In this document: piece after piece, positions 4,698-29,951 of the stretch
How positions within the stretch are numbered: position 1 is the first letter of the stretch
Layout: every line of letters starts with the position of its first letter
Assembly: GCA_002269645.1 (NCBI GenBank)
Contig: NIVC01001374.1
Span: 186,001-250,000 of the forward strand
DNA: 64,000 bases
DNA from: Macrostomum lignano
Taxonomy: Eukaryota
Direction: 5' to 3'
Program-made: the position numbers and the translations under genes
Notes under the pieces: generated by a model
Told to the model about the DNA's origin: nothing
The model's input: the letters and a program-made list of their open reading frames with translations, nothing else
The model's database searches: none

Positions 4698-6612
4698 TCA
4701 CGCGGTTTGTTTGTCAATACCAAGATAAGCTTTCGCTCCACCAGCGAGACCCGTTCTGTCGGGATCAATTGTTTGAGCTGTCGGATCACTTTTTCCGGAT
4801 TTGGATAGAGCAATGCCAGCAGCTCCAGTAGCGGCCAAGCCGGTTGTGGCAGCGCCAGCACCTATGAAGCCGATTTTCTTTTTGTGTGGACCGATAGCCC
4901 CACCCGCTTTTTTAAAGAAGCCTCCGCTCTTTTTGCAGGGCAGAAACGGATTCTGGCAGCCGGGATTATCCAAGTCGGCGGACTTTTTTGATTTCCCCTT
5001 TTGAGCCGCACCGGCCTTCTTACCCACGGATTTCACCAGGCCGCCCTCGTTGCAGGGAAAAAACGGATTTTTACACCCGGGATTATCCATGTCGGTAACG
5101 CTGGACTTCCTGTTTGCGTTGCCCGGCGCGTCGCCGGCTTTCTTAGCAGATTTCAGCTTAAAAAACGATTTCGCTCGCGATTTCACTGCAAACAAGGATT
5201 GAATAGATTGTAGCAATCACAGCTACTCTCACCAACCACAGCTGCTCTCACCAATCACAGCTTCTCTCACCAATCACAGCTGCTCTCACCAATCACAGCT
5301 GCTCTCACCAATCACAGCTTCTCTCACCAATCACAGCCTGCTCTCACCAATCACAGCCTGCTCTCACCAATCACAGCTACTCTCACCAACCACAGCTGCT
5401 CTCACCAATCACAGCCTGCTCTCACCAATCACAGCCTGCTCTCACCAATCACAGCTGCTCTCACCAATCACAGCTTCTCTCACCAATCACAGCCTGCTCT
5501 CACCAATCACAGCCTGCTCTCACCAATCACAGCTTCTCTCACCAATCACAGCCTGCTCTCACCAATCACAGCTTCTCTCACCAATCACAGCTGCTCTCAC
5601 CAATCACAGCTTCTCTCACCAATCACAGCTTCTCTCACCAATCACAGCCTGCTCTCACCAATCACAGCTTCTCTCACCAATCACAGCCTGCTCTCACCAA
5701 TCACAGCCTGCTCTCACCAATCACAGCCTGCTCTCACCAATCACAGCCTGCTCTCACCAATCACAGCCTGCTCTCACCAATCACAGCCTGCTCTCACCAA
5801 TCACAGCTTCTCTCACCAATCACAGCTGCTCTCACCAATCACAGCCTGCTCTCACCAATCACAGCTTCTCTCACCAATCACAGCTTCTCTCACCAATCAC
5901 AGCTTCTCTCACCAATCACAGCCTGCTCTCACCAATCACAGCCTTCTCTCACCAATCACAGCCTGCTCTCACCAATCACAGCCTGCTCTCACCAATCACA
6001 GCTTCTCTCACCAATCACAGCTTCTCTCACCAATCACAGCCTGCTCTCACCAATCACAGCTTCTCTCACCAATCACAGCTGCTCTCACCAATCACAGCTT
6101 CTCTCACCAATCACAGCTTCTCTCACCAATCACAGCCTGCTCTCACCAATCACAGCTTCTCTCACCAATCACAGCTTCTCTCACCAATCACAGCTTCTCT
6201 CACCAATCACAGCCTGCTCTCACCAATCACAGCCTGCTCTCACCAATCACAACCTGCTCTCACCAATCACAGCTTCTCTCACCAATCACAGCTGCTCTCA
6301 CCAATCACAGCCTGCTCTCACCAATCACAGCTTCTCTCACCAATCACAGCCTGCTCTCACCAATCACAGCTTCTCTCACCAATCACAGCCTGCTCTCACC
6401 AATCACAGCTTCCCTCGACTTCACTTCCTACTAATAAAATTATTGAATTTCTCAGACATTCAATGTGCAAATTAATAATAAAGCATTATTTCCATAAACT
6501 CGATAAACTCACATGATTTTACTGCTTTCGGGCAGCATTGGCCGCCGCTTGGAAACTGGCTGACAATCGTGAGCAGAATAAAGTAAATTGCTATAAAGCT
6601 TTGAGTTCGCAT
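4698..6612 (-). CDS. Secreted cationic protein A0, 195 aa, two exons (6612-6513, 5185-4698)
   Basis: Exon 1 MRTQSFIAIYFILLTIVSQFPSGGQCCPKAVKS (signal peptide) with phase-1 GTGAGT donor; acceptor ttgtttgcag; exon 2 continues in frame: K-rich, two DNPGCxNPFxPC repeats, Gly/Ala-rich hydrophobic stretch IGFIGAGAATTGLAATGAAGIAL. Confidence 0.8.
5215..6412. repeat. 19-20-bp minisatellite (ctctcaccaatcacagc[tt/ctg]), ~60 copies, in the A0 intron
   Basis: Direct tandem periodicity visible in the sequence. Confidence 0.97.
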
Positions 6613-8154: not shown

Positions 8155-9555
8155 ATGGGATGCATAAGATTAGCATTGCTATTTAGCATTGTGCTGGTGA
8201 TCCTCATCGAACCTGGTGAAGGCTGTGTCAAGAAATTGAAGGCTTTGAAAGGTGGTAAGTAGTCAGTCTTGCAGTTGGCAATGAAATTGGTAAAACTTGA
8301 GACTGCTCGAATTCATATGGCCTTTTTTAACACGCTCGTACTGAGATCAACGCGGGAGGGAGCTGTCGTGCGATTCGGGCACAGAAAGTGTACATGCCTG
8401 ATGATTGGACAGTCAAAGGGCCGCTGTACACCCAAGGACAATTTAAGTAGAACGCAACACTCGAAATCTGTGGTAAATATTTTGAAGGCAACTTTTCGCC
8501 GAAAAATACAGTATAGGAGGATTTAATCTTTTCAGCACAAAAATTGTTATTGCTTTTGATAGGAGGCAGATCCAGTGTTCATCTTTTGGTATGTTGTGCC
8601 TTTTTTATTGCTCTATCGATATTCATAGAGCTTTTCGTTCAGAAATAGTTTTAAAGGAAGGTTTCACCGGAAAAATACATTAAGGAGATAGGAAATTTCA
8701 CGATTTTCAACACTAAAACAGTGATTGGGTCTCTTAACAGTGTCAGAGAAAGTTCTAATCACACTATTTTGTGCCTCACATGCTGCTCTCACGACGCATT
8801 AATCGATTTTTCATGTTAAATTGGTCTGTCACTTGAAAAAAACGTTTAAAATAATTACAAGACCAATATAAAGGCGAAAAGTTGCCTTCAAAACATTTAC
8901 CAATAGATTTCGAGTGAGGCGCGCTTGTGTACACCCTGTGTGAGGCGCGCTTGTGTACACCCTGTGTGAGGCGCGCTTGTGTACACCCTGTGTGAGGCGC
9001 GCTTGTTTACACCCTGAGTGAGGCGCGCTTGTGTACACCCTGTGTGAGGCGCGCTTGTGTACACCCTGTGTGAGGCGCGCTTGTGTACACCCTGTGTGAG
9101 GCGCGCTTGTGTACACCCTGTGTGAGGCGCGCTTGTGTACACCCTGTGTGAGGCGCGCTTGTGTACACCCTGTGTGAGGCGCGCTTGCATGCAGAATTGC
9201 CTCAGCGCTGCGGCTGTGGGAAGATGTCGCCGAAGCGTATCCCAATTATTATTGCTATTATTTTCTAAATGCCACTGGGCATTCATTCATTTCATTCTAA
9301 CAAAACTTCGCGCCCCCAGCTTTCAAGAGAGTCGGCAAGGTGTTCAAAATAGCCAGACGCCCAAAAGCCGCCAAAGTCATTGCGAATTCTGCGGACGACG
9401 TTGGCAAGGTGGCCAAGAAGTCCAAGAGCTTCAGCACGGCGCGCTCGCTCCTCATTGGTGGCACGGTTGGAGGTGCGGCACTGGGGGGCGCCGTGTACGT
9501 GGGGGTAAATGAGAAGAAAAAAGGCATGAGCAGCGGTTCGTACGTCACCCACTAA
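8155..9555 (+). CDS. Secreted cationic amphipathic/Gly-zipper peptide precursor A1, 111 aa, two exons (8155-8254, 9320-9555)
   Basis: Exon 1 MGCIRLALLFSIVLVILIEPGEG-CVKKLKALKG with GTAAGT phase-1 donor; acceptor cgcccccag; exon 2 AFKRVGKVFKIARRPKAAKVIANSADDVGKVAKKSKSFSTARSLLIGGTVGGAALGGAVYVGVNEKKKGMSSGSYVTH*. Exon 1 has a close paralogue in A2. Confidence 0.85.
8458..8916. mobile_element. MITE-like element with ~43-bp terminal inverted repeats in the A1 intron
   Basis: cactcgaaatctgtggtaaatattttgaaggcaacttttcgcc (8458-8500) is the near-perfect reverse complement of ggcgaaaagttgccttcaaaacatttaccaatagatttcgagtg (8873-8916); no TSD found. Confidence 0.65.
8913..9187. repeat. 26-bp minisatellite (gtgaggcgcgcttgtgtacaccctgt), ~10 copies, A1 intron
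   Basis: Direct tandem periodicity. Confidence 0.97.
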
Positions 9556-9949
9556 GAGACCCTGCACAGACATGCATGAGGAAATAATGTGTACTTTGCG
9601 GTATTCTTATACTCGAAATACTCGTTGCGTATTCAATTGTTAAGTATATAGCCAATTTACCAAAAATGTTTCTTTTAAAATTTATTTGTAAATCAGCACA
9701 GTTTCTTTTAAATTAGATCCAGATCTACGTAGTTTGCCAAAATTGCACTTTGAGCAGTTGAAATGTGTTTTTGTAAATTTTGTTTTACTGGATGTTATTT
9801 TTACCGGTATGTCATCGGCAGAGGACTCGTGACTTTAGTTTTAACATATAATATAAATAAAGCTTCGTAGACAGTTTCAGTTGTGCTTCACAGATTATAT
9901 CTCATATATTCTTATAGTGACTATGTACTCAATTCTTTTAAGCTTGCAT

Positions 9950-10425
9950 CATTCACCTTGGTAATCACCCACCTTGGTAATCACCCACCTTGGTAATCAT
10001 TCACCTTGGTAATCATCCACCTTGGTAATCGTCCACCTTGGTAATCATTCACCTTGGTAATCACCCACCTTGGTAATCACCCACCTTGGTAATCACCCAC
10101 CTTGGTAATCACCCACCTTGGTAATCACCCACCTTGGTAATCATCCACCTTGGTAATCACCCACCTTGGTAATCACCCACCTTGGTAATCACCCACCTTG
10201 GTAATCACCCACCTTGGTAATCGTCCACCTTGGTAATCATTCACCTTGGTAATCACCCACCTTGGTAATCACCCACCTTGGTAATCACCCACCTTGGTAA
10301 TCATCCACCTTGGTAATCGTCCACCTTGGTAATCATCCACCTTGGTAATCACCCACCTTGGTAATCATCCACCTTGGTAATCGTCCACCTTGGTAACCAC
10401 CCACCCATCACCATCCGCCTTGGTG
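9950..10425. repeat. 16-bp minisatellite (ccaccttggtaatcac), ~29 copies
   Basis: Direct tandem periodicity between A1 and A2. Confidence 0.97.
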
Positions 10426-10832
10426 ATCAGAATAAAATAAACCACAGCGTAATAATGTCATTTATTCGAATATAAACATTTAAATGCATTGCAAAGGTGG
10501 TCTTTGCTTAAGTTTTACTTAATTCTATCTCGAACAAAACTGCAAGACGACTAATTATAATTATACTGGTGCAGTGAATAAGAGCTTGTTGTTTGCTGCA
10601 GTAATTTGTTACTTTTTTAATAAAGGGACTTTTTTATTATTATACGGCAGTCAGATCATGTCTATGGTAATCTACTATCAACCTAAATGCTTGAAATCGC
10701 TAAAAAATTGATTGCCGAAAAAAGCAACTTGAGCCTCGATGCATCACCTGCCGGTTGTAGTTGTCATCTTGGTAGAAATATCACTTCAATAGAGCAGTCA
10801 TACAAGAGAGTAGAGAATAACTGGGACCTATA

Positions 10833-12331
10833 ATGGGTTACATAAGATTAGCATTGTTATTTACCATTGTGCTGGTGATCCTCATCGAACCTGGCGATGG
10901 CTGCTTTAGGAAATTGAAAGGTGGTAAGTAGTCAGCCTTGCTTATGTGCCTTAAAATTAGAAATTATACTATAATGCATAAGAGAATTACCCAATTGGCA
11001 TTAGTATCAAAATTGGTTTACAGTAGTGCTCTTGCGGAATCACCCGGTTGGTTCAGGGCTCATGGGGGGAATCACCCGGTTGGTTCAGGGCTCATGAGGA
11101 ATCACCCAGTTGGTTCAGGGCTCATGAGGAGTCACCCAGTTGGTTCAGGGCTCATGAGGAATCACCCAGTTGGTTCAGGGCTCATGAGGAATCACCCAGT
11201 TGGTTCAGAGCTCATGAGGAATCACCCAGTTGGTTCAGAGCTCATGAGGAATCACCCAGTTGGTTCAGGGCTCATGAGGAGTCACCCAGTTGGTTCAGGG
11301 CTCATGAGGAATCACCCAGTTGGTTCAGAGCTCATGAGGGGAATCATCCAGTTGGTTCAGGGCTCATGAGGAATCACCCAGTTGGTTTAGGGCTCATAGG
11401 GAATCACCCAGTTGGTTCAGGGCTCATAGGGAATCACCTAGTAGGTTCAGGCCTCTAGAGGAATCACCCTGTTAATTGATTTAGGGCTCATAGGGAATCA
11501 CCCAGTTGGTTCAGGGCTCATAGGGAATCACCTAGTAGGTTCAGGCCTCTAGAGGAATCACCCTGTTAATTGATTCAGGGCTCATAGGGAATCACCCATT
11601 TGGTTCGGGGGCGTATGGGGGAGTTGCCGAGTGGCCTCGAATGCGCTGCTAAGATTTAATTCTGAAAGAAAGAATGCTTATATCATAGGCCGAAAAGTTT
11701 TGATATTGGCGCACTTAAATGTGCTCGGGACTTTGTGCTGCCGTAATGGAAATATGTGCAACCGACAGCTCAGCCGCAGTTATCTCAGCGGCTGTTCAGT
11801 CCAAGGACTGGGGGGTCGCCACACACAGCCTCAATTACCCCAGCTAATGCTGGCACCCATTTTACAGCTGGGTGAACTGAAGCTATGCAGAGGTTAAGTG
11901 TCTTTCTCAAGGACACAAATTGTTCCAGTAGGATCAGGAATCGAACCCCCGACCTTGAACCACTAGGCTACAGTCCCCTGTGAATATTGTTACAACTATA
12001 GTATAGGCAGGCACTGATCCGAAACTGAGAGCCGCAACCCCAACCCGCTTCTAATTCGCACGCAGCGGTCAAGGCGGTTGGCAGGCGCGTCGGTCGAGTA
12101 TTCGGACGCGGAAAGAAGGCGCCGAAAGCGGCCGCCGATATTGCCCAAAGCGCCGAGAAGGTGGGCAAAACAGCTAAAAAAAGCCCCAGTGCGACAAAAA
12201 CAGCCGGAATCAGTGTTGGCACTGGAATGCTTGCCGCCGGTACCATTGGTGGTGTCAGTTTGGGCTACACAAATAACAAGAAGAATCGGATGCAAAGCGA
12301 GAGCGCTCCGCCTCCTGTCACATACAAATAG
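10833..12331 (+). CDS. Secreted cationic amphipathic/Gly-zipper peptide precursor A2, 118 aa, two exons (10833-10923, 12066-12331)
   Basis: Exon 1 MGYIRLALLFTIVLVILIEPGDG-CFRKLKG with GTAAGT phase-1 donor; acceptor ttcgcacgcag; exon 2 AVKAVGRRVGRVFGRGKKAPKAAADIAQSAEKVGKTAKKSPSATKTAGISVGTGMLAAGTIGGVSLGYTNNKKNRMQSESAPPPVTYK*, which aligns to A1. This frame is absent from the ORF track. Confidence 0.85.
11035..11605. repeat. 30-bp minisatellite (gaatcacccagttggttcagggctcatgag), A2 intron
   Basis: Direct tandem periodicity; explains the repetitive ORFs at 10938 and 11048. Confidence 0.97.
11745..11975 (-). mobile_element. tRNA-derived SINE copy
   Basis: Reverse complement of the SINE at 46318-46600 (tRNA-like head ggttcgattcc, body tttgtgtccttgag...cagttcacccagctgtaaaatgggtgccagcatt). 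Confidence 0.8.
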
Positions 12332-13305
12332 AAGCCGGCCACGGACAAAAATGTTGGCTACGACCTTACAATCTCTACGCTTAGTACACCATGACAGACA
12401 TTTACTATTTCTTTCCAGCTTTCATTTGTTAATTGAGTGCAATTTGATTTCCTCTACATTTTAAGGCCTCTGTAATGCATTTATACTCGTAGTTGTTTCA
12501 TTAGCATTGGCAACTTTTGTATTTAGTTTATCTGATGCTGGAAAAATGCTTAAACACTTTCAACAATTACAGTTAGACAGAATACAGACTCATGTTCCAC
12601 TAAGTGTGGCGGCAGTGAATTTCGAAAAACTTTACTTGACTTTCCTATTAATTGCTTATCAGGTTAAAAGTACATGTGCACACCGTGGCTGCATGGAGAG
12701 GAAGATCACAGAAAAGCGAAAGCAACACTGCTTCCAAGGGGGGTTGTGCCTGCCCGAGGAAAAAACAAACCAAACTTGCTAATTACTTGATAAGTCAACA
12801 ATGGAACCTCGTGGCGAGGACAGCCTAAGTAAAGTACATTCGATAAGTACTTTCCAAGTACTTGAATGTAGAGACAGGCGTGTACTTTGTAAACTTTTCA
12901 AGTCGATTGAACTTGGACAAAAGCATTGCATATACTGTTTAAGTTCATGACAATGATACTTTGCAAACTTGATAAGTCAACAATGTCATCCAAGTGCATG
13001 GTTGACTTTGAAAGTTTAGCATGTGTATTTTTCCGGTTGGCATCTCTGGGACTAAAGTTCGCAAAGTTTTTTTTGTTAAAATTTACGTTTTGATCGATTG
13101 CGAACTCGCAGAGTTTGCTATAGCCATAAAGCATGCACAGTTAATAGTTAAAAGATTGCCCACAGTCTACAGCAGCCACCCTATCTATGGGCTCACTCAC
13201 GGGTAAAGAAGCGGCTGAGAAAATCATAGTTAGGTAGACAAAAGTGCACTTTGCGAGACGCGGGCTAGAAGAAGAAGCTCGGACTGCAAATCAGATTAGC
13301 TTGAA

Positions 13306-13855
13306 ATGGTGCTATTGAAATGGTCGATGAAATGCCTGTTGCTGGCAGTCATTCTGCTAGCTGTGCTGCCGGACTATAGCAGCGGATGCAAAGCGGCGGT
13401 CAATAAGGGTGAGTTGGCAATTCCAACCGCATGTTTTCATTCAGTAAAAACAGTAAAAAGGACTATAAGAGGGGAATGTCATGCCATTAACAGCCGTGAT
13501 GACAAAGCCTTAAAAAGTCAGTCAGTTTATGAACAGACTCTGACAAAACACACTTTTCCCCATGCTATATTTAACAGTGAAAGAGTTCTACAAGTCTTAC
13601 ACGCTAAAGAAAAAACCGAAAGAGGAAACTGACGAAGCCGAAAAGAAGAAAAAGCAGGAGGCAGAAGAAAAAGAATACAAGAAGAAATTGGACGAGGCCA
13701 AAGCGAAAATGCGACAGCGAAACAAACAGCTCCTTGAAACCATAGCAACCGAGCGCACCAAGCAGGAGTCTCTGCTGGAGCAGCGGAAGAAGAAAGGCGA
13801 GAAGAAGATCGCAGGCATTGTGGCCACCACCACTGGTACGCAAATAATCCTCTAG
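13306..13855 (+). CDS. Secreted Lys/Glu-rich coiled-coil protein B1, 126 aa, two exons (13306-13408, 13578-13855)
   Basis: Exon 1 MVLLKWSMKCLLLAVILLAVLPDYSSG-CKAAVNK, phase-1 GTGAGT donor; acceptor tttaacag; exon 2 VKEFYKSYTLKKKPKEE...KKKLDEAKAKMRQR...KIAGIVATTTGTQIIL*; homologous to B2. Confidence 0.85.
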
Positions 13856-14294
13856 ATTGCGGAGACCGCTCCGCAACCATCAGCTGCAGTTTTATTTATT
13901 AAGGACGAAACCGAGATAATTGACAGTTTAAGGCGCAGCTCAAGACAAAAGCCTGAGAAGTTTTGTTAATATTCTAGAGTTCTACTGGTCAGGAAATTTA
14001 ATTTCGTTTACTTTACTGGATCGGTTTATAAATAATACACAGGACAGTGTTTTAACTCATTTTTAATTGCCTGTTTTATTGCAATTTCTCATTCAATTAG
14101 ATGTATTGCGATTTTCAAGAGGATAGAGAAGTACGAGCTATTTGTGCAGCACTGTATTGTCTATTGTGGTATTAGAGAGAAAAAAACTGCTATGGCAATT
14201 ACCGCTGGCACGGACTGCTCGGTTTCAGCTTGCAGGAGTGTAAGCTGCCGGGTAGGATTAATTATGGAGGGCGCTGAAGCGTCAGCACCAGGAT

Positions 14295-14592
14295 ATTTAG
14301 CACCAGTGGTTTTAGCACCAGTGGCTTTAGCACCAGGGGCTTTAGCACCAGTGGCTTTAGCACCAGTGGTTTTAGCACCAGTGGTTTTAGCACCAGTGGT
14401 TTTAGCACCAGTGGCTTTAGCACCAGGGGCTTTAGCACCAGTGGTTTTAGCACCAGTGGTTTTAGCACCAGTGGCTTTAGCACCAGGGGCTTTAGCACCA
14501 GTGGCTTTAGCACCAGTGGCTTTAGCACCAGTGGTTTTAGCACCAGTGGTTTTAGCACCAGGGGCTTTAGCACCAGGGGCTTTAGCACCAGG
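14295..14592. repeat. 15-bp minisatellite (ttagcaccagtggct), ~20 copies
   Basis: Direct tandem periodicity; source of the PVALA/GAKAT/LKPLV ORFs. Confidence 0.97.
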
Positions 14593-15265
14593 GACGATTG
14601 CATGGAAAGGCGGAAGGCCATGCAGCCACCAGTCCAGTTGAACGCGGAGCTCGCCCGCCACGGGAATCCGGCGATGACACCCGTTGATGGTGTTGGTGAC
14701 GTCAATTCGAGCTCGCAGAAAGACTCGAGCGGGGCGAGCCACCTTGCAAAAACCAGCCGATTTTGCCCACCAGCTTTTGATGTTGAAGCTTTGACAGACT
14801 CTTAGCGCTCAAACCTCCATGCAGCAACATCCGCAGCTCATCTGTCTTGCTCTGCGGCAGGGATAGCAGCTAGACCGGATGTGCTGTCGATTTGCACTCC
14901 CAGGAATGTGATACACGTAGCAGGTGGGCTGGTATTTTCCCAATCGATGCAGCTAATCCCAGCGTGGGAGGCAAGTCGTATGAGCTTCTAAAAAAACAAC
15001 AACGCACACCGCCGGGGAACAGACTACAGTTCACAAAGGTCGGTGTCGGATCAGTCTTCTCACAGCGCTGGCTCTCTGAAGGCGGCTACAGCGTGCACCT
15101 GGCCAATCACCCCAGCGTAATCCAGCTAGCAATCCGCGAAGCACATCCGGAAGTACAACACAATTAGAATAAATAAAATGCAGGTATAAAAGTGGGAACA
15201 TAAAGTCAATATTTGCTAGTCTGAACTCGAAATGTGAGTAAAGGAAACGACAGTGTACGTCAATA

Positions 15266-16337
15266 TTGTGGGTCAATATCGTACGTCAATATCAGTCACT
15301 TCGCCCTGGAGTGCACCCTGGCCAAAGTCCTAACACCATCCTTCGAAACCGCATTCAACCCATCATCAACCAGAGGCTTCTCAATATCCAGAACGGCTTC
15401 CGACCTGGACGGTCAACAGCAAAAACAAGTCGCTGCGGTCCGGTGCATCATAGACACCTGCAAGACTCGCCAAAAGGCGGTGTCAATTGTTTTTGCAGAT
15501 TTGTGCAAAGCTTTTGACTCAGTCAGCCGGGCGGCCAGGCCATTGCGTAGCTCCTCCAGCAGCATGGAGTTTATCAGATGCTGGTCCAGGCGATCATGGA
15601 CCTCTACAGCTCATCCAAGGCGCTTTCGTCTAGACTGACCACGGCCCTAAAGCTGAATTGACAACCACTTCCGCAAAGCGACACCTGTTTGTATTCGTCA
15701 TCCTGATCGACTTCGTCATGCGGTTGGCTCTGCGCGATGAAGACGGCTATGAAGTGGTGTTTCGCCGTAGCTCCCGCTTTGCCTGCGTCAAGCCGACCTG
15801 CCTCGCCTGCGCCGACGACCTGGCGCTGACCTGCTGCAGTCCCGAAGCTGCGCAGACGGCGGTGAGTCGGCGGACCAACGAGGGGAAGCGCGTGGGGCTC
15901 CACATCAACTACGGCAAGGCAGAGGTGCTGCATGTTGGCATTGCCAACTCTCCACTGCTGCTTCTGCCGGACAGCAACACCATCGCCCTGTGCAACCAGT
16001 TCAAGTATCTGGGGTGTCCTGGTCTCTGACCCGGATGTCATTGTCAACAACCGCAAGCACAGCCTGGTGGGCCTCCCACCTTCTCCGCTCCATCTTCAAC
16101 TACTGGCTCGCCACCGACAGCCTGAACGTCGCCCTATTCCGCTCGGCAGTTGAGACGGTGCTGACCTACGGGCTGCTGGAAACTGTTCCCATGACTGCCA
16201 CTCGTCAGGCGAGCTTGGAGGGCTGCCATCGCCACCTCATGCACAATGCCCTGGGCATCCGGTTCCCCGAGCGCGTGAGCAACGCCGAGCTGGCGGCCCG
16301 GACCCGCGTGGTCGCAGAGACGACGCCAGATGTCTGA
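15266..16337 (+). mobile_element. Degenerate non-LTR retrotransposon (LINE) reverse transcriptase fragment
   Basis: Frameshifted RT motifs QNGFRPGRST, VFADLCKAFDSVSR, ACADDLAL, GLHINYGKAEVL, QFKYLG and LFRSAVETVLTYG. Confidence 0.85.
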
Positions 16338-16492
16338 CTATCGACCAACAGTATAATAATGTGCAAATAAGGAACAGGAATACAAATCAGCAGTAATATA
16401 TTAGATGTGAAGTAACCAGTAATTGCGGCAATTAAGCTTTATATACGCAAAGCGCGCTATTACTAAAATGCATTATTATATGGTACATAGCG

Positions 16493-17238
16493 ATCGCAGA
16501 AGTGCGCCAAAATGAACTAGTTGAATTAGTGGGACATCGCAGAAGTGCGCCAAAAAGAAGTAGTTGAATTAGTGGGACATCGCAGAAGTGCGCCAAAATG
16601 AACTATTTGAATTAGTGGGACATCGCAGAAGTGCGCCAAAATGAACTAGTTGAATTAGTGGGACATCGCAGAAGTGCGCCAAAAAGAAGTAGTTGAATTA
16701 GTGGGACATCGCAGAAGTGCGCCAAAATGAACTAGTTGAATTAGTGGGACATCGCAGAAGTGCGCCAAAATGAACTAGTTGAATTAGTGGGACATCGCAG
16801 AAGTGCGCCAAAAAGAACTAGTTGAATTAGTGGGACATCGCAGAAGTGCGCCAAAAAGAACTAGTTGAATTAGTGGGACATCGCAGAAGTGCGCCAAAAT
16901 GAACTAGTTGAATTAGTGGGACATCGCAGAAGTGCGCCAAAAAGAACTAGTTGAATTAGTGGGACATCGCAGAAGTGCGCCAAAAAGAACTAGTTGAATT
17001 AGTGGGACATCGCAGAAGTGCGCCAAAATGAACTAGTTGAATTAGTGGGACATCGCAGAAGTGCGCCAAAAAGAACTAGTTGAATTAGTGGGACATCGCA
17101 GATGTGCGCCAAAATGAACTAGTTGAATTAGTGGGACATCGCAGAAGTGCGCCAAAATGAACTAGTTGAATTAGTGGGACATCGCAGAAGTGCGCCAAAA
17201 TGAACTAGTTGAATTAGTGGGACATCGCAGAAGTGCGC
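16493..17238. repeat. 43-bp minisatellite (cgcagaagtgcgccaaaatgaactagttgaattagtgggacat), ~17 copies
   Basis: Direct tandem periodicity with high identity. Confidence 0.97.
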
Positions 17239-17490
17239 GACCAAAAGTTAAGCAGTTTTAGAAACCCATTGTACTGCGACGTTTAGGTTTAGTTTAGCTT
17301 TGTTTAGTTTAGCACAATGATATGTTGCATACACAAATTTCTCCCTCCCACTCTCTCCATTTTCTTTCATTATTCCCGATAAGATCAGAAAAAGCCCAGT
17401 AAATAATAAAATGCCCGAAATGGCTGCATTTCAGTCTGGTACACTTCGACTCATGGATTTGCAGATGGATGAGAGGCTGCAGCTTCGTCG

Positions 17491-18936
17491 TCATTGTGAC
17501 CGCAGTGCATTCAGTTGCTCTACTAGCCAAGGGAGATACGCAGTGGAGCGTAGTTTCCTTTTAGCGGACCAGAAGCCGGCTACAACGACATATCTACTCT
17601 TCATGTTGTCGGTTACTTCGTTAATGCTGACATAAACTGGACACATTTCCATAACAGACCTTTTAAAAATTGGAAAGCCATCGATGCACACTGAATACGT
17701 GAGGTCACTTCGTGAGCCCAGTGCAATAGACCGCTTGAATGCCGCATACGCAGTTCCGCTACCCATGTAAAGACGTCCCACGTTCGCCGGCTGATCGACG
17801 GGATATATTACGTGGTCTAGAAGATGGCATTCTTCGATCATCTGTCGTACTTGGCTGCCTATATCCATTCGCCAGAAGTGCCCAACAGACTCTGGCGATT
17901 CCAATCTAGCATTACAATGCGGACAGTGATTTGGGCGCGGTTGTTGCATCTCGCGATCGCAGCTCAGACAATACACTGAAGGTCTGCATCTCGTGTAGGA
18001 GTACGGTGTCAGGTTTAGCAAATTGTCCAGCATTTGACGGGTCTGTGGAAACGCAGCATTTACAGGAAGCACGGCCTTTGTGTAGGCAAGCAATTTGTCG
18101 ACACCATGTACAGAAAGATTTTGAGCAAAGGCCAGACACTGAGCTAGGGTTCCAATTGCAGCGTATGACACAGTAGCGCCAGGATAGGCGGCCAACTGGC
18201 AAAAGTTACGCAGTTTAGCGTCGTCTGAATCATAATCATCGCCGTCACCGTCATCGCTGTATTCGGCATCGTCGGTAGGCGCTTGGCTGGCAGAGCTTTC
18301 GGTAGCTTCGCTGGCATCGCCGGCTTCACTGGCAGTTTCGCTGGCAGAGCTTTCGGTAGCTTCGCTGGCATCGCCGGCTTCACTGGCAGTTTCGCTGGCA
18401 GAGCTTTCGGTAGCTTCGCTGGCATCGCCGGCTTCACTGGCAGTTTCGCTGGCAGAGCTTTCGGTAGCTTCGCTGGCATCGCCGGCTTCACTGGCAGTTT
18501 CGCTGGCAGAGCTTTCGGTAGCTTCGCTGGCATCGCCGGCTTCACTGGCAGTTTCGCTGGCAGAGCTTTCGGTAGCTTCGCTGGCATCGCCGGCTTCACT
18601 GGCAGTTTCGCTGGCAGAGCTTTCGGTAGCTTCGCTGGCATCGCCGGCTTCACTGGCAGTTTCGCTGGTGGAGGCTTCGCCGGTAGATGGCGGTTGTGAA
18701 GTAGCTTCGCCGGTAGATGGCGGTTGTGGAGTACCTTCGCTACCGATGTCGTCGTCTGGATGACGGCGCTTATTACCACGATTCGTCTGTGGATTTCCAA
18801 TGGCGGCGCCCATTGCAGTCGTTCCAGATTGCAACCACTGTTGTCGCCTTTGAAATAGAAGCTGCACTGTCTTGCGTTCTCGAAATCGTTTCACTCTTAA
18901 ACGATTCATAATGGCGCGGCGTTGCTGGTCTTCCAT
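17491..18936 (-). mobile_element. CACTA/EnSpm-type transposase, C-terminally truncated, with an internal 54-bp coding repeat
   Basis: IDGFPIFKRSVMEMCPVYVSINEV...VVVAGFWSAKRK...YLPWLVEQLNAL matches the tnp2/Transposase_21-type catalytic start. It is preceded by a CxxC...CPHC zinc motif and ~7 copies of ASETASEAGDASEATESS (18283-18670). Confidence 0.75.
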
Positions 18937-19309
18937 GATAGAGATTTTTGTTCTTAATGATTCTTATCCTCTGCAAAAGTGGCAAACGTTCATGAGAAAT
19001 TAGTCAGTTGCTTCGTGGGTTACCGTCACTTCTCCTTATATACTGATTTGAAAGAGAACGTATCCCTGGGCATAGGTAATAAATTTGCTTCCCTATTCAT
19101 AACTATCACTTGTCCATACCTAACTATATATAACTGGGTATCCATGTGACCTATTTCAGGAGAGGCTACTCTGTAAAATTGTAAAGTAAAAATTCAGGCA
19201 ACAATAACACGTGCGTCACGCCGCACTCAAATTAAGCAACATAGTAGCAGCCTATTATGCAATGAAGACGACAACAGTTGGTAGAAAGCGACAAGTAGTA
19301 AACTCCACA

Positions 19310-20065
19310 ACAGAACAAAACGGTCACAAAATACGGTAACAGTGAACGGTAACATGTGACCCTGAACAAACGGTCACAAAATACAGTCACATTGAACGGT
19401 CACATGGTGACCCTAAACAAAACGGTCACAAAATACGGTCACATTGATCGGTAACATGTGACCCTAAACAAAACGGTCACAAAATACGGTCACATTGATC
19501 GGTAACATGTGACCCTAAACAAAACGGTCACAAAATACGGTCACATTGATCGGTAACATGTGACCCTAAACAAACGGTCACAAAATACGGTCACATTGAT
19601 CGGTAACATGTGACCCTAAACAAACGGTCACAAAATACGGTCACATTGAACGGTCACATGGTTACCCTAAACAAAACGGTCACAAAATACGGTCACATTG
19701 ATCGGTAACAGTGACCCTGAACAAACGGTCACAAAATACAGTCACATTGAACGGTCACATGGTTACCCTAAACAAAACGGTCACAAAATACGGTAACATT
19801 GATCGGTAACATGTGACCCTAAACAAAACGGTCACAAAATACGGTCACATTGATCGGTAACATGTGACCCTAAACAAAACGGTCACAAAATACGGTAACT
19901 ATGAACAGTCACATTGTTACCCTAAACAAAATGGTCACAAAGTACGGTAACATTGAACAGTCACCTGGTGACCCTGAACTAAACAGTCACAAATACGGTA
20001 AAAAATGGTAACTGGTGACCGTAACGGTAAAAAACACGGTAACAGCCCCTTTTTGTGACCGTTTC
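19310..20065. repeat. ~51-bp tandem repeat (aaacggtcacaaaatacggtcacattgatcggtaacatgtgaccctaaaca), probable subterminal repeats of the CACTA element
   Basis: Tandem periodicity upstream of the transposase; the core aaacggtcacaaaa also occurs inverted (ttttgtgaccgttt, ~20051-20064), as in CACTA subterminal arrays. Confidence 0.8.
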
Positions 20066-20725
20066 GTTTTATACGGGTTAGAGATTTAAACTTATTTGGA
20101 GCCACTGCAGGAGACTGTAAATTTTGGTGCACTGTGTGAATGCGGGCAGTGTGCGGTATCTTGGTTTCTGTTGCAGTTTTTCAAAGTTTTTAACTACCTC
20201 GTTGACCGAAGATGGCCAGACCGATGATGGTTGAAGAGGAAGAACCAATGGGATGGGTCGGAGAAGATACGTCGTAGTCATGTCAACCCTGATGTTGGTA
20301 CCTGACGAGTTGTGAGTTCTCAGCTTATTAATCTAGACTATAAATTCTTCCCTTAGTTTCATTTTGTAGTTATTTTAGACACGCTTAAATAGGTCACAAT
20401 TAGTTTGCAATCGAGTGGTTGAGAGTGAGAAAGTGTTTTGGCTGCTAGATCGAGTTGGATTCAAGCTGCCATTTGTTGGCTTTAACATGTAGCTGAGTGA
20501 ATGACGAATTCCAATCACTCTTCACCCGCGCGGTTCCCTGCATCTTTTTACCCAGAAACAAAAAGTAAATAAGTGGAATTTTACGCGCGCACTGAAGCCT
20601 GAGTGAGAAGGCCATAGACTATACTCTAGGGCGAGCTGTCAAAGTGTAGTTTACTAGGAAAGTAAAGCTGCGAGGCTAAGCCCATCTATCTTATCGGCAA
20701 CGCTCCTTTCGGATGCCAACAAGTA

Positions 20726-21234
20726 ATGGCATTTTTCAGATACCTAGCATTGCCTGCAATCTTGTTCGCGGTTTTTGTACAATACAGCGAAGGATGCAAA
20801 AAACCGGCTCCTGTGCAGCAGGGTGAGTGAGTCAAAGTTGTGCCGCCGTTACTATTATGTTATTATTGGACCAGCATATTAAAAGTAGCGATCTGTAGGA
20901 CCTGATTCGATGCAGTCATTGAACCCGCCCCACAGTTCAGCAGAATGTTGAAGCAAACTATGAGCTAGAACAGCGGCTGGCGCAAGAACAGCGCGAGCGT
21001 GACAACGCCGAGAGGTTGCGGCGAAGAGCCGAACAAAAGAAGAAAGAAGAGCAATACAAGAAGGAATTGAAGGAGGCAAAAGCGAAAATGAAGGAGCGCA
21101 AAGAGAAGATTCTAAACTTGGTCGCGGCCCAGCGATCATACCAGATTGCTCTGATGAAGAAGCGCAAAAAGAACGGGGCTCAGAAAATATACGGTGTCGA
21201 CGCGGAGGTAACAGGCACCCAGCTTGTCATATGA
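20726..21234 (+). CDS. Secreted Lys/Glu/Gln-rich coiled-coil protein B2, 131 aa, two exons (20726-20822, 20936-21234)
   Basis: Exon 1 MAFFRYLALPAILFAVFVQYSEG-CKKPAPVQQ, phase-1 GTGAGT donor; acceptor ccccacag; exon 2 VQQNVEANYELEQRLAQEQRER...QYKKELKEAKAKMKERK...KIYGVDAEVTGTQLVI*; homologous to B1. Confidence 0.85.
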
Positions 21235-22614: not shown

Positions 22615-23190
22615 TTATTTCGACAGGCTGTTCAGAAGGCCGAGCAGCCGGTCCAGTGTGCTCACAATGGCATCAGTCTTGGCGCAGTCCGAACTCTCAA
22701 GCAGGCGAGCCTGATAGTAATCAATCCGGTCAAGAGTGGCCGCCCGCAGTCTCTCTTCAACACAGACGCGGTCCTTGCCAGCCTGTGCTTGGCTGCGCGA
22801 TGGCGCCTGCGAGCTGGCAACGGAGGCGGCGGCTGCGGCGGCCTCTCTGGCGTGGACTCGGGCGGCCGACTCCGACTGAGCCGGGTCGTCTTTGCTAACG
22901 TCGGACTCGAGCTCGCGACAGGCGATGCAATAGTTGCCACCGCCGTTGCTCACCTCCATGAGGATGGTGCCGCAGTCGGGGCACACGTGGTCCAGCATTT
23001 TCCAGCCTTTGAGCAGGTACTCGCCCATCCGTTTGGCGATCTTGTCCGAGCGCTCGCGGCGAGCTTTCAGAACTTTCTGCTCCGCCTCGGTTGGCGGGCG
23101 CCACTCGGCATCGAAGCTGGCGTCGCCATTGTCGGCAGTTGATGATGAAGATGCGGCTGCTTGTTCGCGGAGTAGACTGCGAAAATCCAT
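22615..23190 (-). CDS. ZNRD2: ZNRD2/SSSCA1-like zinc-ribbon protein, single exon, 191 aa
   Basis: RRERSDKIAKRMGEYLLKGWKMLDHVCPDCGTILME...YCIAC matches the Auto_anti-p27/SSSCA1 zinc ribbon. Confidence 0.9.
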   Translation of the reverse strand: MDFRSLLREQAAASSSSTADNGDASFDAEWRPPTEAEQKVLKARRERSDKIAKRMGEYLLKGWKMLDHVCPDCGTILMEVSNGGGNYCIACRELESDVSKDDPAQSESAARVHAREAAAAAASVASSQAPSRSQAQAGKDRVCVEERLRAATLDRIDYYQARLLESSDCAKTDAIVSTLDRLLGLLNSLSK

Positions 23191-28800: not shown

Positions 28801-29951
28801 GTTGGTCAGGTGCTGCTCAGGGGTTGGTCAGGTGCTGCTCAGGGGTTGGTCAGGTGCTGCTCAGGGGTTAGTCAGGTGCTGCTCAGGGGTTAGTCAGGTG
28901 CTGCTCAGGGGTTAGTCAGGTGCTGCTCAGGGGTTAGTCAGGGGTTGGTCAGGAGTTAGTCAGGAGCTGCTCAGGGGTTAGTCAGGGGTTGGTCAGGTGC
29001 TGCTCAGGGGTTAGTCAGGGGTTGGTCAGGTGCTGCTCAGGGGTTAGTCAGGGGTTGGTCAGGTGCTGCTCAGGGGTTAGTCAGGGGTTAGTCAGGGGTT
29101 GGTCAGGTGCTGCTCAGGGGTTAGTCAGGTGCTGCTCAGGGGTTACTCAGGGTTTGGTCAGGTGCGGCTCAGGGGTTAGTCAAGTGCTGCTCTTGGGTTA
29201 CTCAGGGGTTAGTCAAGTGCTGCTCTTGGGTTACTCAGGGGTTAGTCAGGTGCTGCTCTTGGGTTACTCAGGGGTTAGTCAGGTGCTGCGCAGGGGTAAC
29301 TCAGGGAATCAGAATAACTGCTAAGAGGCGGCTCCTACGATTCGTAAAGTCGGTTTCTCTTAATTCCCAAGTCTGTTTAGTGAAGATTCTCAATGTCTAA
29401 GGCTTTCAATTACCCAGCAGTTGGTCCGCGGTGCCGCAGTCACCAGCCTGAGCAGCCGCTAGCAATCTCTGCTCCAGCTGTTTGCCAGCGTGAATCTCAG
29501 CGGCAGCAATCATGTCGGCAACCTCAGGCGTTTTAGCCAAATCTGACGGGGTCTGATTGGCGTAGTTTGTCAGGCGGACATCGCAGCCGGCGTCTAGGAG
29601 GATTCGAACCACGGACGACCGGCCAGTATAGCTGGCCTTGTGCAAAGGAGTGTCGCCATTGTCGGCTGGGGCGTCGACATCGGCGCCATGTTCCAGCAGG
29701 AATCGGCAGGCCTCAGAGTGGCCAAAGAAAGCAGCCAGGTGCAGCGGAGTCCAACCAAAGAAGCTCTTGGAGTAGCTGGGTAGGTTCAAGCTGAAGCCGG
29801 GCATTGCTCGGTTGAGGCTGAGCAATTGTTGCAAATCGTCTACTGAATTGTTTCTGGCGCACTGGCTCACCAGCTCGCGAAGCTCATCCAGCTCTAGCAG
29901 GCAGCCGTTGGCATAGTCCGTTTTCGCCTCAGGCTGGTGGCACTCGGTCAT
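25812..29951 (-). CDS. OSBPL1A: OSBPL1A/ORP1L-like ankyrin-PH-coiled-coil-FFAT protein, 584 aa, four exons (29951-29414, 28487-28019, 27256-26986, 26288-25812); no ORD seen
   Basis: Ankyrin repeats (GWTPLHLAAFFGH, GDTPLHKASYTG, GNTPLHLAA), PH domain (LLGWRTIHVELDNAELRYY...RQLWLTAIRRH), coiled coil, FFAT-like EDETFADCLS. Splice phases 1/2/0 join in frame, and the domain order and sequence match the ORP1L N-terminal half. Confidence 0.8.
26395..26972. repeat. 32-33-bp intronic minisatellite (gctgtaattgactgtctgtgtcagactgcttca)
   Basis: Direct tandem periodicity. Confidence 0.95.
27270..27525. repeat. 20-bp intronic minisatellite (gattgagattctctggtctg)
   Basis: Direct tandem periodicity. Confidence 0.95.
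27740..27980. repeat. 16-18-bp degenerate intronic repeat (gatagagataaggg..)
   Basis: Imperfect tandem periodicity. Confidence 0.85.
28595..29305. repeat. Compound intronic minisatellite (ggtgctgctcaggggttagtca / ggggttggtca)
   Basis: Mixed 11- and 22-bp units in tandem. Confidence 0.92.

Follow-up and report, generated by a model that had tools for sequence, protein, structure and literature searches.

Five two-exon genes, all of them transcribed, form a tandem cluster in Macrostomum lignano and encode predicted secreted, cationic and largely helical proteins in which a Cys lies at or close to the predicted mature N-terminus. Among the possible uses of this Cys we consider an intermolecular disulfide, and hence the formation of covalent dimers, the most likely, with a probability of about 0.4. 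The five genes appear to represent one fast-diverging family, or at least to have a common ancestral first exon, and as far as can be seen from the searches below they are restricted to Macrostomum.

The cluster lies in the 64,000-nucleotide stretch of contig NIVC01001374.1 that was analysed here (the window; coordinates in the text and in Table 1 refer to it). A1 (Mlig005534), A2 (Mlig014360), B1 (Mlig025199) and B2 (Mlig007023) are neighbours on the plus strand, while A0 (Mlig010768) is on the minus strand. Our spliced models are equal in length to the GenBank gene calls (111, 118, 126, 131 and 195 aa for A1, A2, B1, B2 and A0, respectively) and agree with the deposited proteins at 98% or 100% identity; specifically, A1 matches database protein P0001 at 98% identity and B1 matches P0003 at 100%, and A2 corresponds to P0004, which was retrieved by a profile search with A1 and A2. 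The M. lignano gene annotation was itself built from RNA-seq transcripts (PMC5730564). All five are real two-exon genes, spliced as modelled.

Table 1. Exons, splice donors and encoded features of the five clustered genes (window coordinates).
Feature	Position	Strand	Content
A0 exon 1 (PAA68728.1)	6513..6612	-	Spliced model; signal peptide, then ...PSGG-Q-C-C-PKAVKS
A0 two Cys codons	6537-6532	-	In exon 1
A0 donor	exon 1 end	-	T/GTGAGT, phase 1
A0 exon 2	4698..5185	-	Basic region, two DNPGC-x-NPF-x-PC motifs, Gly/Ala-rich hydrophobic segment (IGFIGAGAATTGLAATGAAGIAL), tail
A1 exon 1 (PAA68729.1)	8155..8254	+	Signal peptide MGCIRLALLFSIVLVILIEPGEG, Cys24 (codon 8224-8226), VKKLKALK
A1 donor	exon 1 end	+	G/GTAAGT, phase 1
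A1 exon 2	9320..9555	+	Cationic amphipathic helix (muH 0.66), glycine-zipper-like segment LLIGGTVGGAALGGAVYVGV, tail NEKKKGMSSGSYVTH
A2 exon 1 (PAA68730.1)	10833..10923	+	Signal peptide ...IEPGDG, Cys24 (codon 10902-10904), FRKLKG; phase-1 donor
A2 exon 2	12066..12331	+	Cationic amphipathic region (muH 0.73), Gly-rich hydrophobic segment, tail
B1 exon 1 (PAA68731.1)	13306..13408	+	Signal peptide ...LPDYSSG, Cys28 (codon 13387-13389), KAAVNK
B1 donor	exon 1 end	+	G/GTGAGT, phase 1
B1 exon 2	13578..13855	+	Long K/E-rich helix, C-terminus IAGIVATTTGTQIIL
B2 exon 1 (PAA68732.1)	20726..20822	+	Signal peptide ...VQYSEG, Cys24 (codon 20795-20797), KKPAPVQQ
B2 donor	exon 1 end	+	G/GTGAGT, phase 1
B2 exon 2	20936..21234	+	K/E/R-rich helix, C-terminus IYGVDAEVTGTQLVI

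The initial annotation had based the cluster on six peptide strings, and all six are indeed present where it placed them. The sixth presumed member, B0 (2086-2241), is nevertheless not a gene, which corrects the count from six to five. That is, its reading frame opens with TTG, the hydrophobic run after the first ATG amounts to just VKVILL, leaving it without a signal peptide, and there is no annotated gene at this position. In addition, B0 sits within an insertion (998-2657) that is lacking from the two other genomic copies of the locus.

Signal peptide cleavage was predicted with the (-3,-1) rule, applied where the hydrophobic core (h-region) ends. By this rule, no bond close to the h-region end other than that between Gly23 and Cys24 is an allowed site in A1, A2 and B2. 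For B1, Gly27/Cys28 is allowed and best placed, with Cys28/Lys29 and Ala30/Ala31 allowed as well. The predicted signal peptides of 23-27 aa, with c-regions of 5-7 aa, are of typical dimensions. The earlier proposal that every member carries a Cys directly behind the cleavage site thus agrees with the unique predicted sites of A1, A2 and B2 and the favoured site of B1; it is only approximated by A0, where the best site is Gly24/Gln25 and the mature chain is predicted to start Q-C-C, with Cys at +2 and +3, and it falls away for B0. The cut originally suggested for A0, Gln25/Cys26, would have a disfavoured residue at -1. Given this predicted Gln start, the family-wide feature is better described as a Cys near the N-terminus than as a Cys at +1. 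The accompanying observation of a single Cys in the mature chain is borne out by direct count for A1, A2, B1 and B2, whereas mature A0 contains six. The first four therefore have no intramolecular disulfide partner, from which an intermolecular disulfide or a modification may reasonably be inferred.

How unusual is such a Cys? Roughly 3,500 human proteins have a signal peptide. Set against this number, the 87 human proteins in which Cys is predicted directly after the signal sequence (PMC8061759) correspond to a rate of about 2-3%. At that base rate, two or three independent occurrences would be improbable (about 1e-3 to 1e-5); the occurrences in the cluster are probably not independent because two paralogue pairs are involved, A1/A2 and B1/B2, and in all five genes exon 1 is built to one plan.

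Indeed, it is doubtful that the members are otherwise unrelated. Each of the five genes consists of two exons separated by a phase-1 intron located 7-10 codons past the Cys, and the coding lengths of exon 1 are 100, 100, 91, 103 and 97 nt for A0, A1, A2, B1 and B2. When the A and B profiles were compared, the sole match ran from the signal peptide through G-C, and when all five proteins were aligned, no columns were invariant except M1, one signal-peptide Ile and G-C. Taken together, the shared gene plan and the profile match argue for one inherited trait rather than convergence, and the Cys looks like a single feature retained by what is probably one family with no homologues detectable elsewhere. 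The three genomic copies of the locus are 98-99% identical (exon 99.17%, intron 98.38%, flank 99.09%), a near-uniform level at which constraint on the Cys is unmeasurable within the species.

Two very large protein searches returned no homologues of either the A or the B family, and protein and profile searches found no orthologues in species other than M. lignano. Likewise, searching 1.84 billion proteins by profile brought up nothing bacterial. Neither the A nor the B proteins could be assigned to a family of Pfam or NCBIfam; NCBIfam gave no match for them, and Pfam at E<=1 gave none for A0, A1 or A2. UniRef labels a chimeric A1/A2 model "Gly-zipper_YMGG domain-containing". Membership in the glycine-zipper families (Pfam Gly-zipper_YMGG/Omp, Rick_17kDa_Anti) was rejected upon finding no Pfam, NCBIfam or bacterial profile match, as was the UniRef naming of B1 as an SXP/RAL-2 (DUF148) protein, since PF02520 was not among the Pfam matches of B1 and B2 at E<=1. 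Neither UniRef-derived name, DUF148 or Gly-zipper_YMGG, could thus be reproduced. We also rejected the possibility of bacterial lipoproteins processed by Lgt and LspA: the lipobox [LVI][ASTVI][GAS]C is absent, its place being taken by GEGC, GDGC, SSGC and SEGC.

The mature chains of the five genes comprise 88-171 aa, carry a net charge of +12 to +21 and are predicted to be mostly helical. In the A proteins (about +17 for the family, and +17 for A1 and A2), an amphipathic cationic helix extends from the Cys onward and is followed by a glycine-zipper-like hydrophobic segment, while the B proteins (about +12) form long K/E-rich helices. In A1, A2, B1 and B2, then, the mature chain is predicted to be helical, has a net charge of +12 to +17 and contains just one Cys, without a partner in the chain. 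AlphaFold2 (AF2) models start a helix at the Cys (H24-44 in A1, H24-45 in B1), an arrangement that would suit a parallel dimer. A0, with its adjacent C-C pair near the N-terminus and two C-x6-C motifs able to pair internally, fits interchain bonds too, which implies that the Cys need not sit exactly at +1.

We envisage that a signal peptide ending in Gly would be removed to leave the Cys at, or no more than two residues from, the new N-terminus, and that the retained Cys would form an intermolecular disulfide inside the ER. On export the proteins may then be covalently joined in parallel pairs, probably as homodimers, or be attached to a matrix or to some other partner with a thiol. Such pairing would double the valency with which the polycationic helix could bind polyanions, for example membranes, mucus glycans or nucleic acids. 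Several properties argue against this scheme: two chains of +12 to +17 would repel one another, and the weak heptad pattern of the B helices (4-5 of 8 a/d positions) means that, apart from the Cys, nothing predicts dimerisation.

One alternative is that the A proteins are small type I membrane proteins with a Gly-rich anchor and a short cytoplasmic tail, in which the N-terminal Cys would join two ectodomains. They would then resemble small disulfide-linked adaptor chains, with the B proteins as soluble partners or unrelated neighbours. Each A protein does possess a hydrophobic segment of 19-23 residues followed by basic residues (NEKKK, NNKKNR, SKSGK), as the positive-inside rule would have it, and AF2 models residues 71-101 of A1 as a single helix. 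The best 19-residue Kyte-Doolittle mean of A1, 1.55, comes near the classical transmembrane threshold of 1.6; however, A1, A2 (1.32) and A0 (1.27) all stay below it, Gly, Thr and Ser are abundant in the segments, and the B proteins carry the Cys without having such a segment. We regard a membrane anchor as unlikely.

Also doubtful is the notion that the Cys has no special chemistry, either because the N-terminal stretch is lost by prohormone- or propeptide-like processing at dibasic sites, because the thiol remains free or because cleavage does not fall between Gly and Cys. KK, KR and RR sites are numerous in the cluster proteins, a conserved [KR]R-VG[KR]VF follows a dibasic site in A1 and A2, and B1 offers the alternative cleavage sites mentioned above; about 2-3% of secreted proteins carry a Cys at +1 that has no known function (87 human cases; PMC8061759). 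Yet G-C is the sole invariant of the mature junction across five diverged proteins, A1 lacks an amidation Gly, and a hydrophobic segment together with a long helix would be atypical for a neuropeptide precursor.

The initial annotation had raised N-palmitoylation by a Hedgehog acyltransferase as a possibility alongside disulfide-linked dimers. Here, a flatworm Hhat/Rasp orthologue would modify the Cys that cleavage exposes in A1 and A2, and perhaps in other members, yielding membrane-tethered or micelle-forming lipopeptides. In Hedgehog and in Spitz, Keren and Gurken, EGF ligands of Drosophila, all of them established substrates, Cys comes first after cleavage and one of the first seven residues is basic, as is predicted for A1, A2, B2 and B1. 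An N-terminal Cys is by itself insufficient for Hhat: a basic residue is needed within the first seven residues, and at position 2 G, S, A, P and Q are tolerated but K is not (PMC8061759). The basic residue is found in A1, A2, B1 and B2 (CVKKLKA, CFRKLKG, CKAAVNK, CKKPAPV), and in Shh the six residues past the cleavage site are enough for recognition (PMC8061759). Unlike in known substrates, however, the second residue of B1 and B2 is Lys, and Gln is the probable first residue of A0; N-palmitoylation of these three is disfavoured. A1 and A2, which have Val and Phe at position 2, do carry the nearby basic residue and may be acceptable. Of the 87 human proteins with Cys at +1, only Hedgehogs are shown substrates (PMC8061759), and the cluster proteins have neither a Hedgehog nor an EGF domain. 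We consider lipidation in the cluster improbable, and it is quite improbable that A1 (C-V-K-K) and A2 (C-F-R-K) in particular are genuine clients of the flatworm enzyme and become N-palmitoylated polycationic helical lipoproteins. If they were, they would be the first Hhat clients beyond the Hedgehog and Drosophila EGF-ligand families, widening a very short substrate list and providing an animal analogue of bacterial lipopeptides.

Very improbable, finally, is the suggested pairing of A with B chains through their N-terminal Cys into a two-component effector, for although A1, A2, B1 and B2 are adjacent on the same strand with one unpaired Cys per chain and disulfide-linked heterodimeric peptides such as distinctin exist (PMC2931633), at +17 and +12 the A and B families are each strongly basic and so lack charge complementarity, their heptad patterns are not complementary, and searches for shared upstream or promoter sequence words and for co-expression data of A with B found none.

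Should the Cys give rise to covalent dimers, the cluster would be a flatworm case of valency-doubled polycationic secreted proteins, for which defence, secretory-granule or mucus components and reproductive-fluid components are candidate roles. Since RNAi, in situ hybridisation and transgenesis are all available in M. lignano, the cluster would be easy to study. We view it as a real but modest curiosity, not as a demonstrated animal lipopeptide.

Among known systems, bacterial lipoproteins offer a superficial likeness: SlyB/Pcp, the 17-kDa antigen and YMGG lipoproteins combine a signal peptide and Cys with a Gly-zipper segment, reminiscent of the A proteins, and Braun lipoprotein Lpp follows them with a Lys-rich helix, reminiscent of the B proteins. 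In contrast, the cluster genes are eukaryotic, with spliceosomal introns, and lie on a 302-kb flatworm contig. Trematode helminth defence molecules are small, secreted, helical, cationic or amphipathic proteins restricted to a flatworm lineage. The cluster proteins are like these, and like other tandemly duplicated, taxon-restricted secreted helical proteins, in size, secretion, helicity and charge, but they have no detectable homology to helminth defence molecules, of which an N-terminal Cys is not a known trait. Nor would a disulfide-linked dimer be the unusual effector design that had been claimed, for disulfide-linked cationic peptides, both homo- and heterodimeric, occur naturally as distinctin, halocidin and dicynthaurin (PMC2931633). 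These peptides, from a frog (distinctin) and tunicates (halocidin and dicynthaurin), have 15-30 residues and no sequence homology to the cluster proteins, whose 88-171 aa far exceed known dimeric peptides unless they are cut at their many dibasic sites; moreover, the Cys of halocidin is C-terminal and that of the cluster N-terminal. Even so, they are secreted cationic helical chains in which a single Cys forms an interchain disulfide, as proposed here, and the amphipathic cationic helix of A1 and A2 (muH 0.66-0.73) is comparable to theirs.

Between 4.7 and 21.2 kb, the window carries a cluster of five two-exon genes falling into two labelled families, A (A0, A1, and A2) and B (B1 and B2). For all five, the GenBank gene calls agree exactly with our spliced models in length and order, and spliced A1 and B1 match GenBank Macrostomum lignano proteins at 98% and 100% identity, respectively. 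Since this annotation derives from RNA-seq transcript assemblies (PMC5730564), the five genes are transcribed, and their splicing is as in our models. Window positions 3306-23855 are 100% identical to contig NIVC01001374.1 (GCA_002269645.1) of this free-living flatworm, and GT-AG introns, minisatellites, and reverse-transcriptase remnants give the window a eukaryotic genomic character. The neighbours of the cluster are ordinary genes, and a weak reverse-transcriptase remnant sits between B1 and B2. Searching the rest of the window by tblastn with the five proteins, low-complexity filtering off, returned no further members; a weak match at 50.9 kb (E=0.009), considered as an extra A0-like member, was rejected for want of ORF support.

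Genes of the cluster, intron minisatellites, and neighbouring features (window positions)
Feature	Position	Strand	Product or repeat
A0 (Mlig010768)	6612-6513 + 5185-4698	minus	195 aa
A1 (Mlig005534)	8155-8254 + 9320-9555	plus	111 aa
A2 (Mlig014360)	10833-10923 + 12066-12331	plus	118 aa
B1 (Mlig025199)	13306-13408 + 13578-13855	plus	126 aa
B2 (Mlig007023)	20726-20822 + 20936-21234	plus	131 aa
A0 intron minisatellite	5214-6410		19 bp x62
A1 intron minisatellite	8914-9187		26 bp x10.5
A2 intron minisatellite	11028-11610		30 bp x19
Listed jointly: SSSCA1/autoantigen-p27 homologue (E=4e-15); ankyrin repeats; Ion_trans_N of HCN-type channel, N-terminus (E=7e-24); weak reverse-transcriptase remnant	22615-23190; 29406-29951; 54749-55609; 15658-16029	minus; minus; plus; plus	

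The whole cluster, with the same five genes, recurs on NIVC01004000.1 and NIVC01000464.1, in keeping with the redundancy known for this assembly (PMC5730564). Because the three copies are 98-99% identical alike in exons, introns, and flanks, constraint (purifying selection) is not quantifiable within the species; the sole contrast between exons and introns lies in gap columns, with 0 in exons versus 1,414 in introns. Introns also hold nearly all length differences among the copies. Between B1 and B2, at 16338-20360, the other two copies lack some 3.7-4.0 kb and carry 220-405 bp instead. The stretch that they lack contains 43-bp (x17) and 51-bp (x13.5) satellites as well as a minus-strand ORF of 481 aa (17491-18936), which includes seven perfect copies of a 54-nt repeat and matches no Pfam family significantly. 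A second copy-specific insertion, of 1.66 kb, occupies 998-2657 and lacks a counterpart in both other copies, in one of which 614-997 directly abuts 2658 onwards. Within it, a K-rich ORF (2307-2603) shows a weak compositional likeness to B1 (tblastn, E=0.02).

The initial annotation had proposed that six cluster members carry a Cys directly after the predicted signal cleavage site, and all six peptide strings it named are indeed present at the sequence level. Applying the (-3,-1) rule, on which all cleavage sites given here are predicted, we find that A1, A2, and B2 permit cleavage close to the end of the hydrophobic core at Gly|Cys alone; in B1, G27|C28 passes and has the best placement, with C28|K29 and A30|A31 passing too. 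The best predicted site in A0 is G24|Q25, which would yield a chain starting Q-C-C. On these rule-based sites, the proposal thus holds for four proteins and approximately for A0, and it fails for B0, the supposed sixth member, whose ORF starts with TTG and whose hydrophobic run from the first ATG spans six residues. As a gene, B0 was likewise rejected: no annotation exists at its position, which falls inside the insertion at 998-2657. The predicted signal peptides have 23-27 residues and c-regions of 5-7 residues, both of which are typical. That this Cys stands alone was borne out, with exactly one Cys in each of mature A1, A2, B1, and B2; mature A0 has six, arranged as a C-C pair plus two C-x6-C motifs.

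By our own estimate of the size of the human secretome, the 87 human proteins with such a Cys amount to about 2-3% of it, and a Cys at +1 would be unlikely to arise independently in as many as two or three families. The count of 87 (PMC8061759) covers proteins in which a Cys is predicted to follow immediately on the signal sequence. The independence of the occurrences is itself doubtful, as paralogue pairs, a common gene plan, and the invariant G-C speak against describing the members as otherwise unrelated. A1 and A2 share 59% identity and B1 and B2 about 42%, each forming a paralogue pair. In 5/5 genes, exon 1 encodes the signal peptide, the G-C, and another 7-10 residues, ending in a phase-1 donor after 100, 100, 91, 103, and 97 coding nt (A0, A1, A2, B1, and B2). 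Only Met1, one signal-peptide Ile, and the G-C are invariant columns in a five-way alignment. When the A and B profiles are compared, similarity is confined to the span from the signal peptide to the G-C (25 columns, P=0.0011, probability 20%), and a non-significant A0-A1 match falls at identical positions (30-44) across the intron. Judging from these alignments, an economical reading would be a single family that was duplicated in tandem and diverges fast, or else a common first exon, under which the Gly-Cys junction would have been kept while nearly all else changed.

None of the five proteins matched a Pfam family at E<=1 or an NCBIfam above noise. A word-indexed search of 5.8 billion proteins with A1 and B1 retrieved only their own M. 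lignano proteins, and the B profile, searched in the same manner, only B1 and B2; the A1/A2 profile, run against 1.84 billion cluster representatives with no word index, retrieved A1, A2, and a model chimeric between them, and nothing else. A0 had no match among PDB sequences, Pfam, or NCBIfam. As far as these searches show, the five genes appear to be orphans within the available collections, which apparently do not include transcriptomes of other Macrostomum species. In an older 120-aa UniRef/MetaClust model, A1 exon 2 is joined to A2 exon 2, beyond which the reading frame is lost. UniRef attaches the name "Gly-zipper_YMGG domain-containing" to the A1/A2 chimera and "DUF148 domain-containing" to B1, neither of which current Pfam reproduced at E<=1. 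A bacterial origin or lipoprotein identity was rejected, there being introns but no lipobox and no Pfam/NCBIfam match; the A1/A2 profile gave 0 bacterial matches among the 1.84 billion representatives.

All mature proteins are strongly basic, with net charges of +17 (A1, A2), +21 (A0), and +12 (B1, B2) and a pI of 9.75-11, a charge that suggests polyanionic targets (membranes, sulfated glycans, nucleic acids). In A1 and A2, a strongly amphipathic cationic helix (muH 0.66-0.73) begins at or just after the Cys; following the first helix, the A proteins continue with a second helix, a glycine-zipper-like hydrophobic segment, and a short basic/polar tail. In the B1 model, a short helix starts at the Cys, and residues 48-123 form a long one (pLDDT > 90 over 61-110). 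The heptad pattern of the B helix is weak and i/i+4 pairs of opposite charge are numerous, an appearance closer to a charged single helix than to a classical coiled coil.

Several smaller motifs were seen in the second exons. B1 and B2 have a common C-terminus, TGTQ(I/L)(I/V)(L/I), within a conserved uncharged end, G-x-x-A-x-x-T-G-T-Q-(I/L)-(I/V)-(L/I)-stop (13800-13855 and 21180-21234). The part before this end, some 80-90 residues long (about 82 in B1 and 91 in B2), is for the most part highly charged helix. In A0 exon 2 (4698-5185), one motif occurs twice, as DNPGC-K-NPFF-PC and DNPGC-Q-NPFL-PC; after each copy come Gly-Gly and a run rich in basic residues, and the two copies probably form two small disulfide loops. 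Right after a dibasic site, A1 (9320-9400) and A2 (12066-12150) share [KR]R-V-G-[KR]-V-F (KRVGKVF and RRVGRVF); the G-R-G-K-K that follows in A2 could be a convertase/amidation-type processing site.

A lone Cys with no intrachain partner may bond to another chain by a disulfide, be modified, stay as a free thiol, or be removed. We tentatively favour the first, at a probability of roughly 0.4: the Cys would form an interchain disulfide and thereby covalent parallel dimers. This choice reflects the helix starting at the Cys, the natural precedent of cationic helical peptides that dimerise through disulfides (PMC2931633), and a family-wide trait that, given the adjacent C-C pair in A0, is a Cys at or next to the N-terminus and not strictly at +1.

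Alternatively, the A proteins could be small type I membrane proteins and not secreted, their hydrophobic segment being borderline (Kyte-Doolittle 19-residue means of 1.55, 1.32, and 1.27, all < 1.6). GPI anchoring was rejected on inspection, with 10-40 polar residues after the hydrophobic segment in the A proteins and a C-terminus too short and polar in the B proteins. N-palmitoylation of the N-terminal Cys by Hedgehog acyltransferase (Hhat), suggested in the initial annotation, is unlikely. The published rules are compatible with A1 (C-V-K-K) and A2 (C-F-R-K), yet Hhat does not accept Lys at position 2, which disfavours B1 and B2 with their C-K starts; moreover, an N-terminal Cys is by itself insufficient, and only Hedgehogs are shown substrates among human Cys+1 proteins (PMC8061759). 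We consider a role of A1 and A2 as new Hhat substrates very unlikely. Heterodimers of A with B lack any support, both families being polycationic and the five upstream regions having no promoter words in common.

No indexed paper mentions any of the five gene identifiers, which are also absent from the supplements of PMC5977470, PMC5816591, PMC7336406, and PMC12732829 (one of these tables being covered in part); no expression data for the A and B genes were found. The Cys feature is real at the sequence level and the gene family undescribed; its striking interpretations are hypotheses, one of them partly contradicted. In kind, the cluster is a familiar one, a tandem array restricted to one taxon and encoding small basic secreted proteins that carry an odd Cys.
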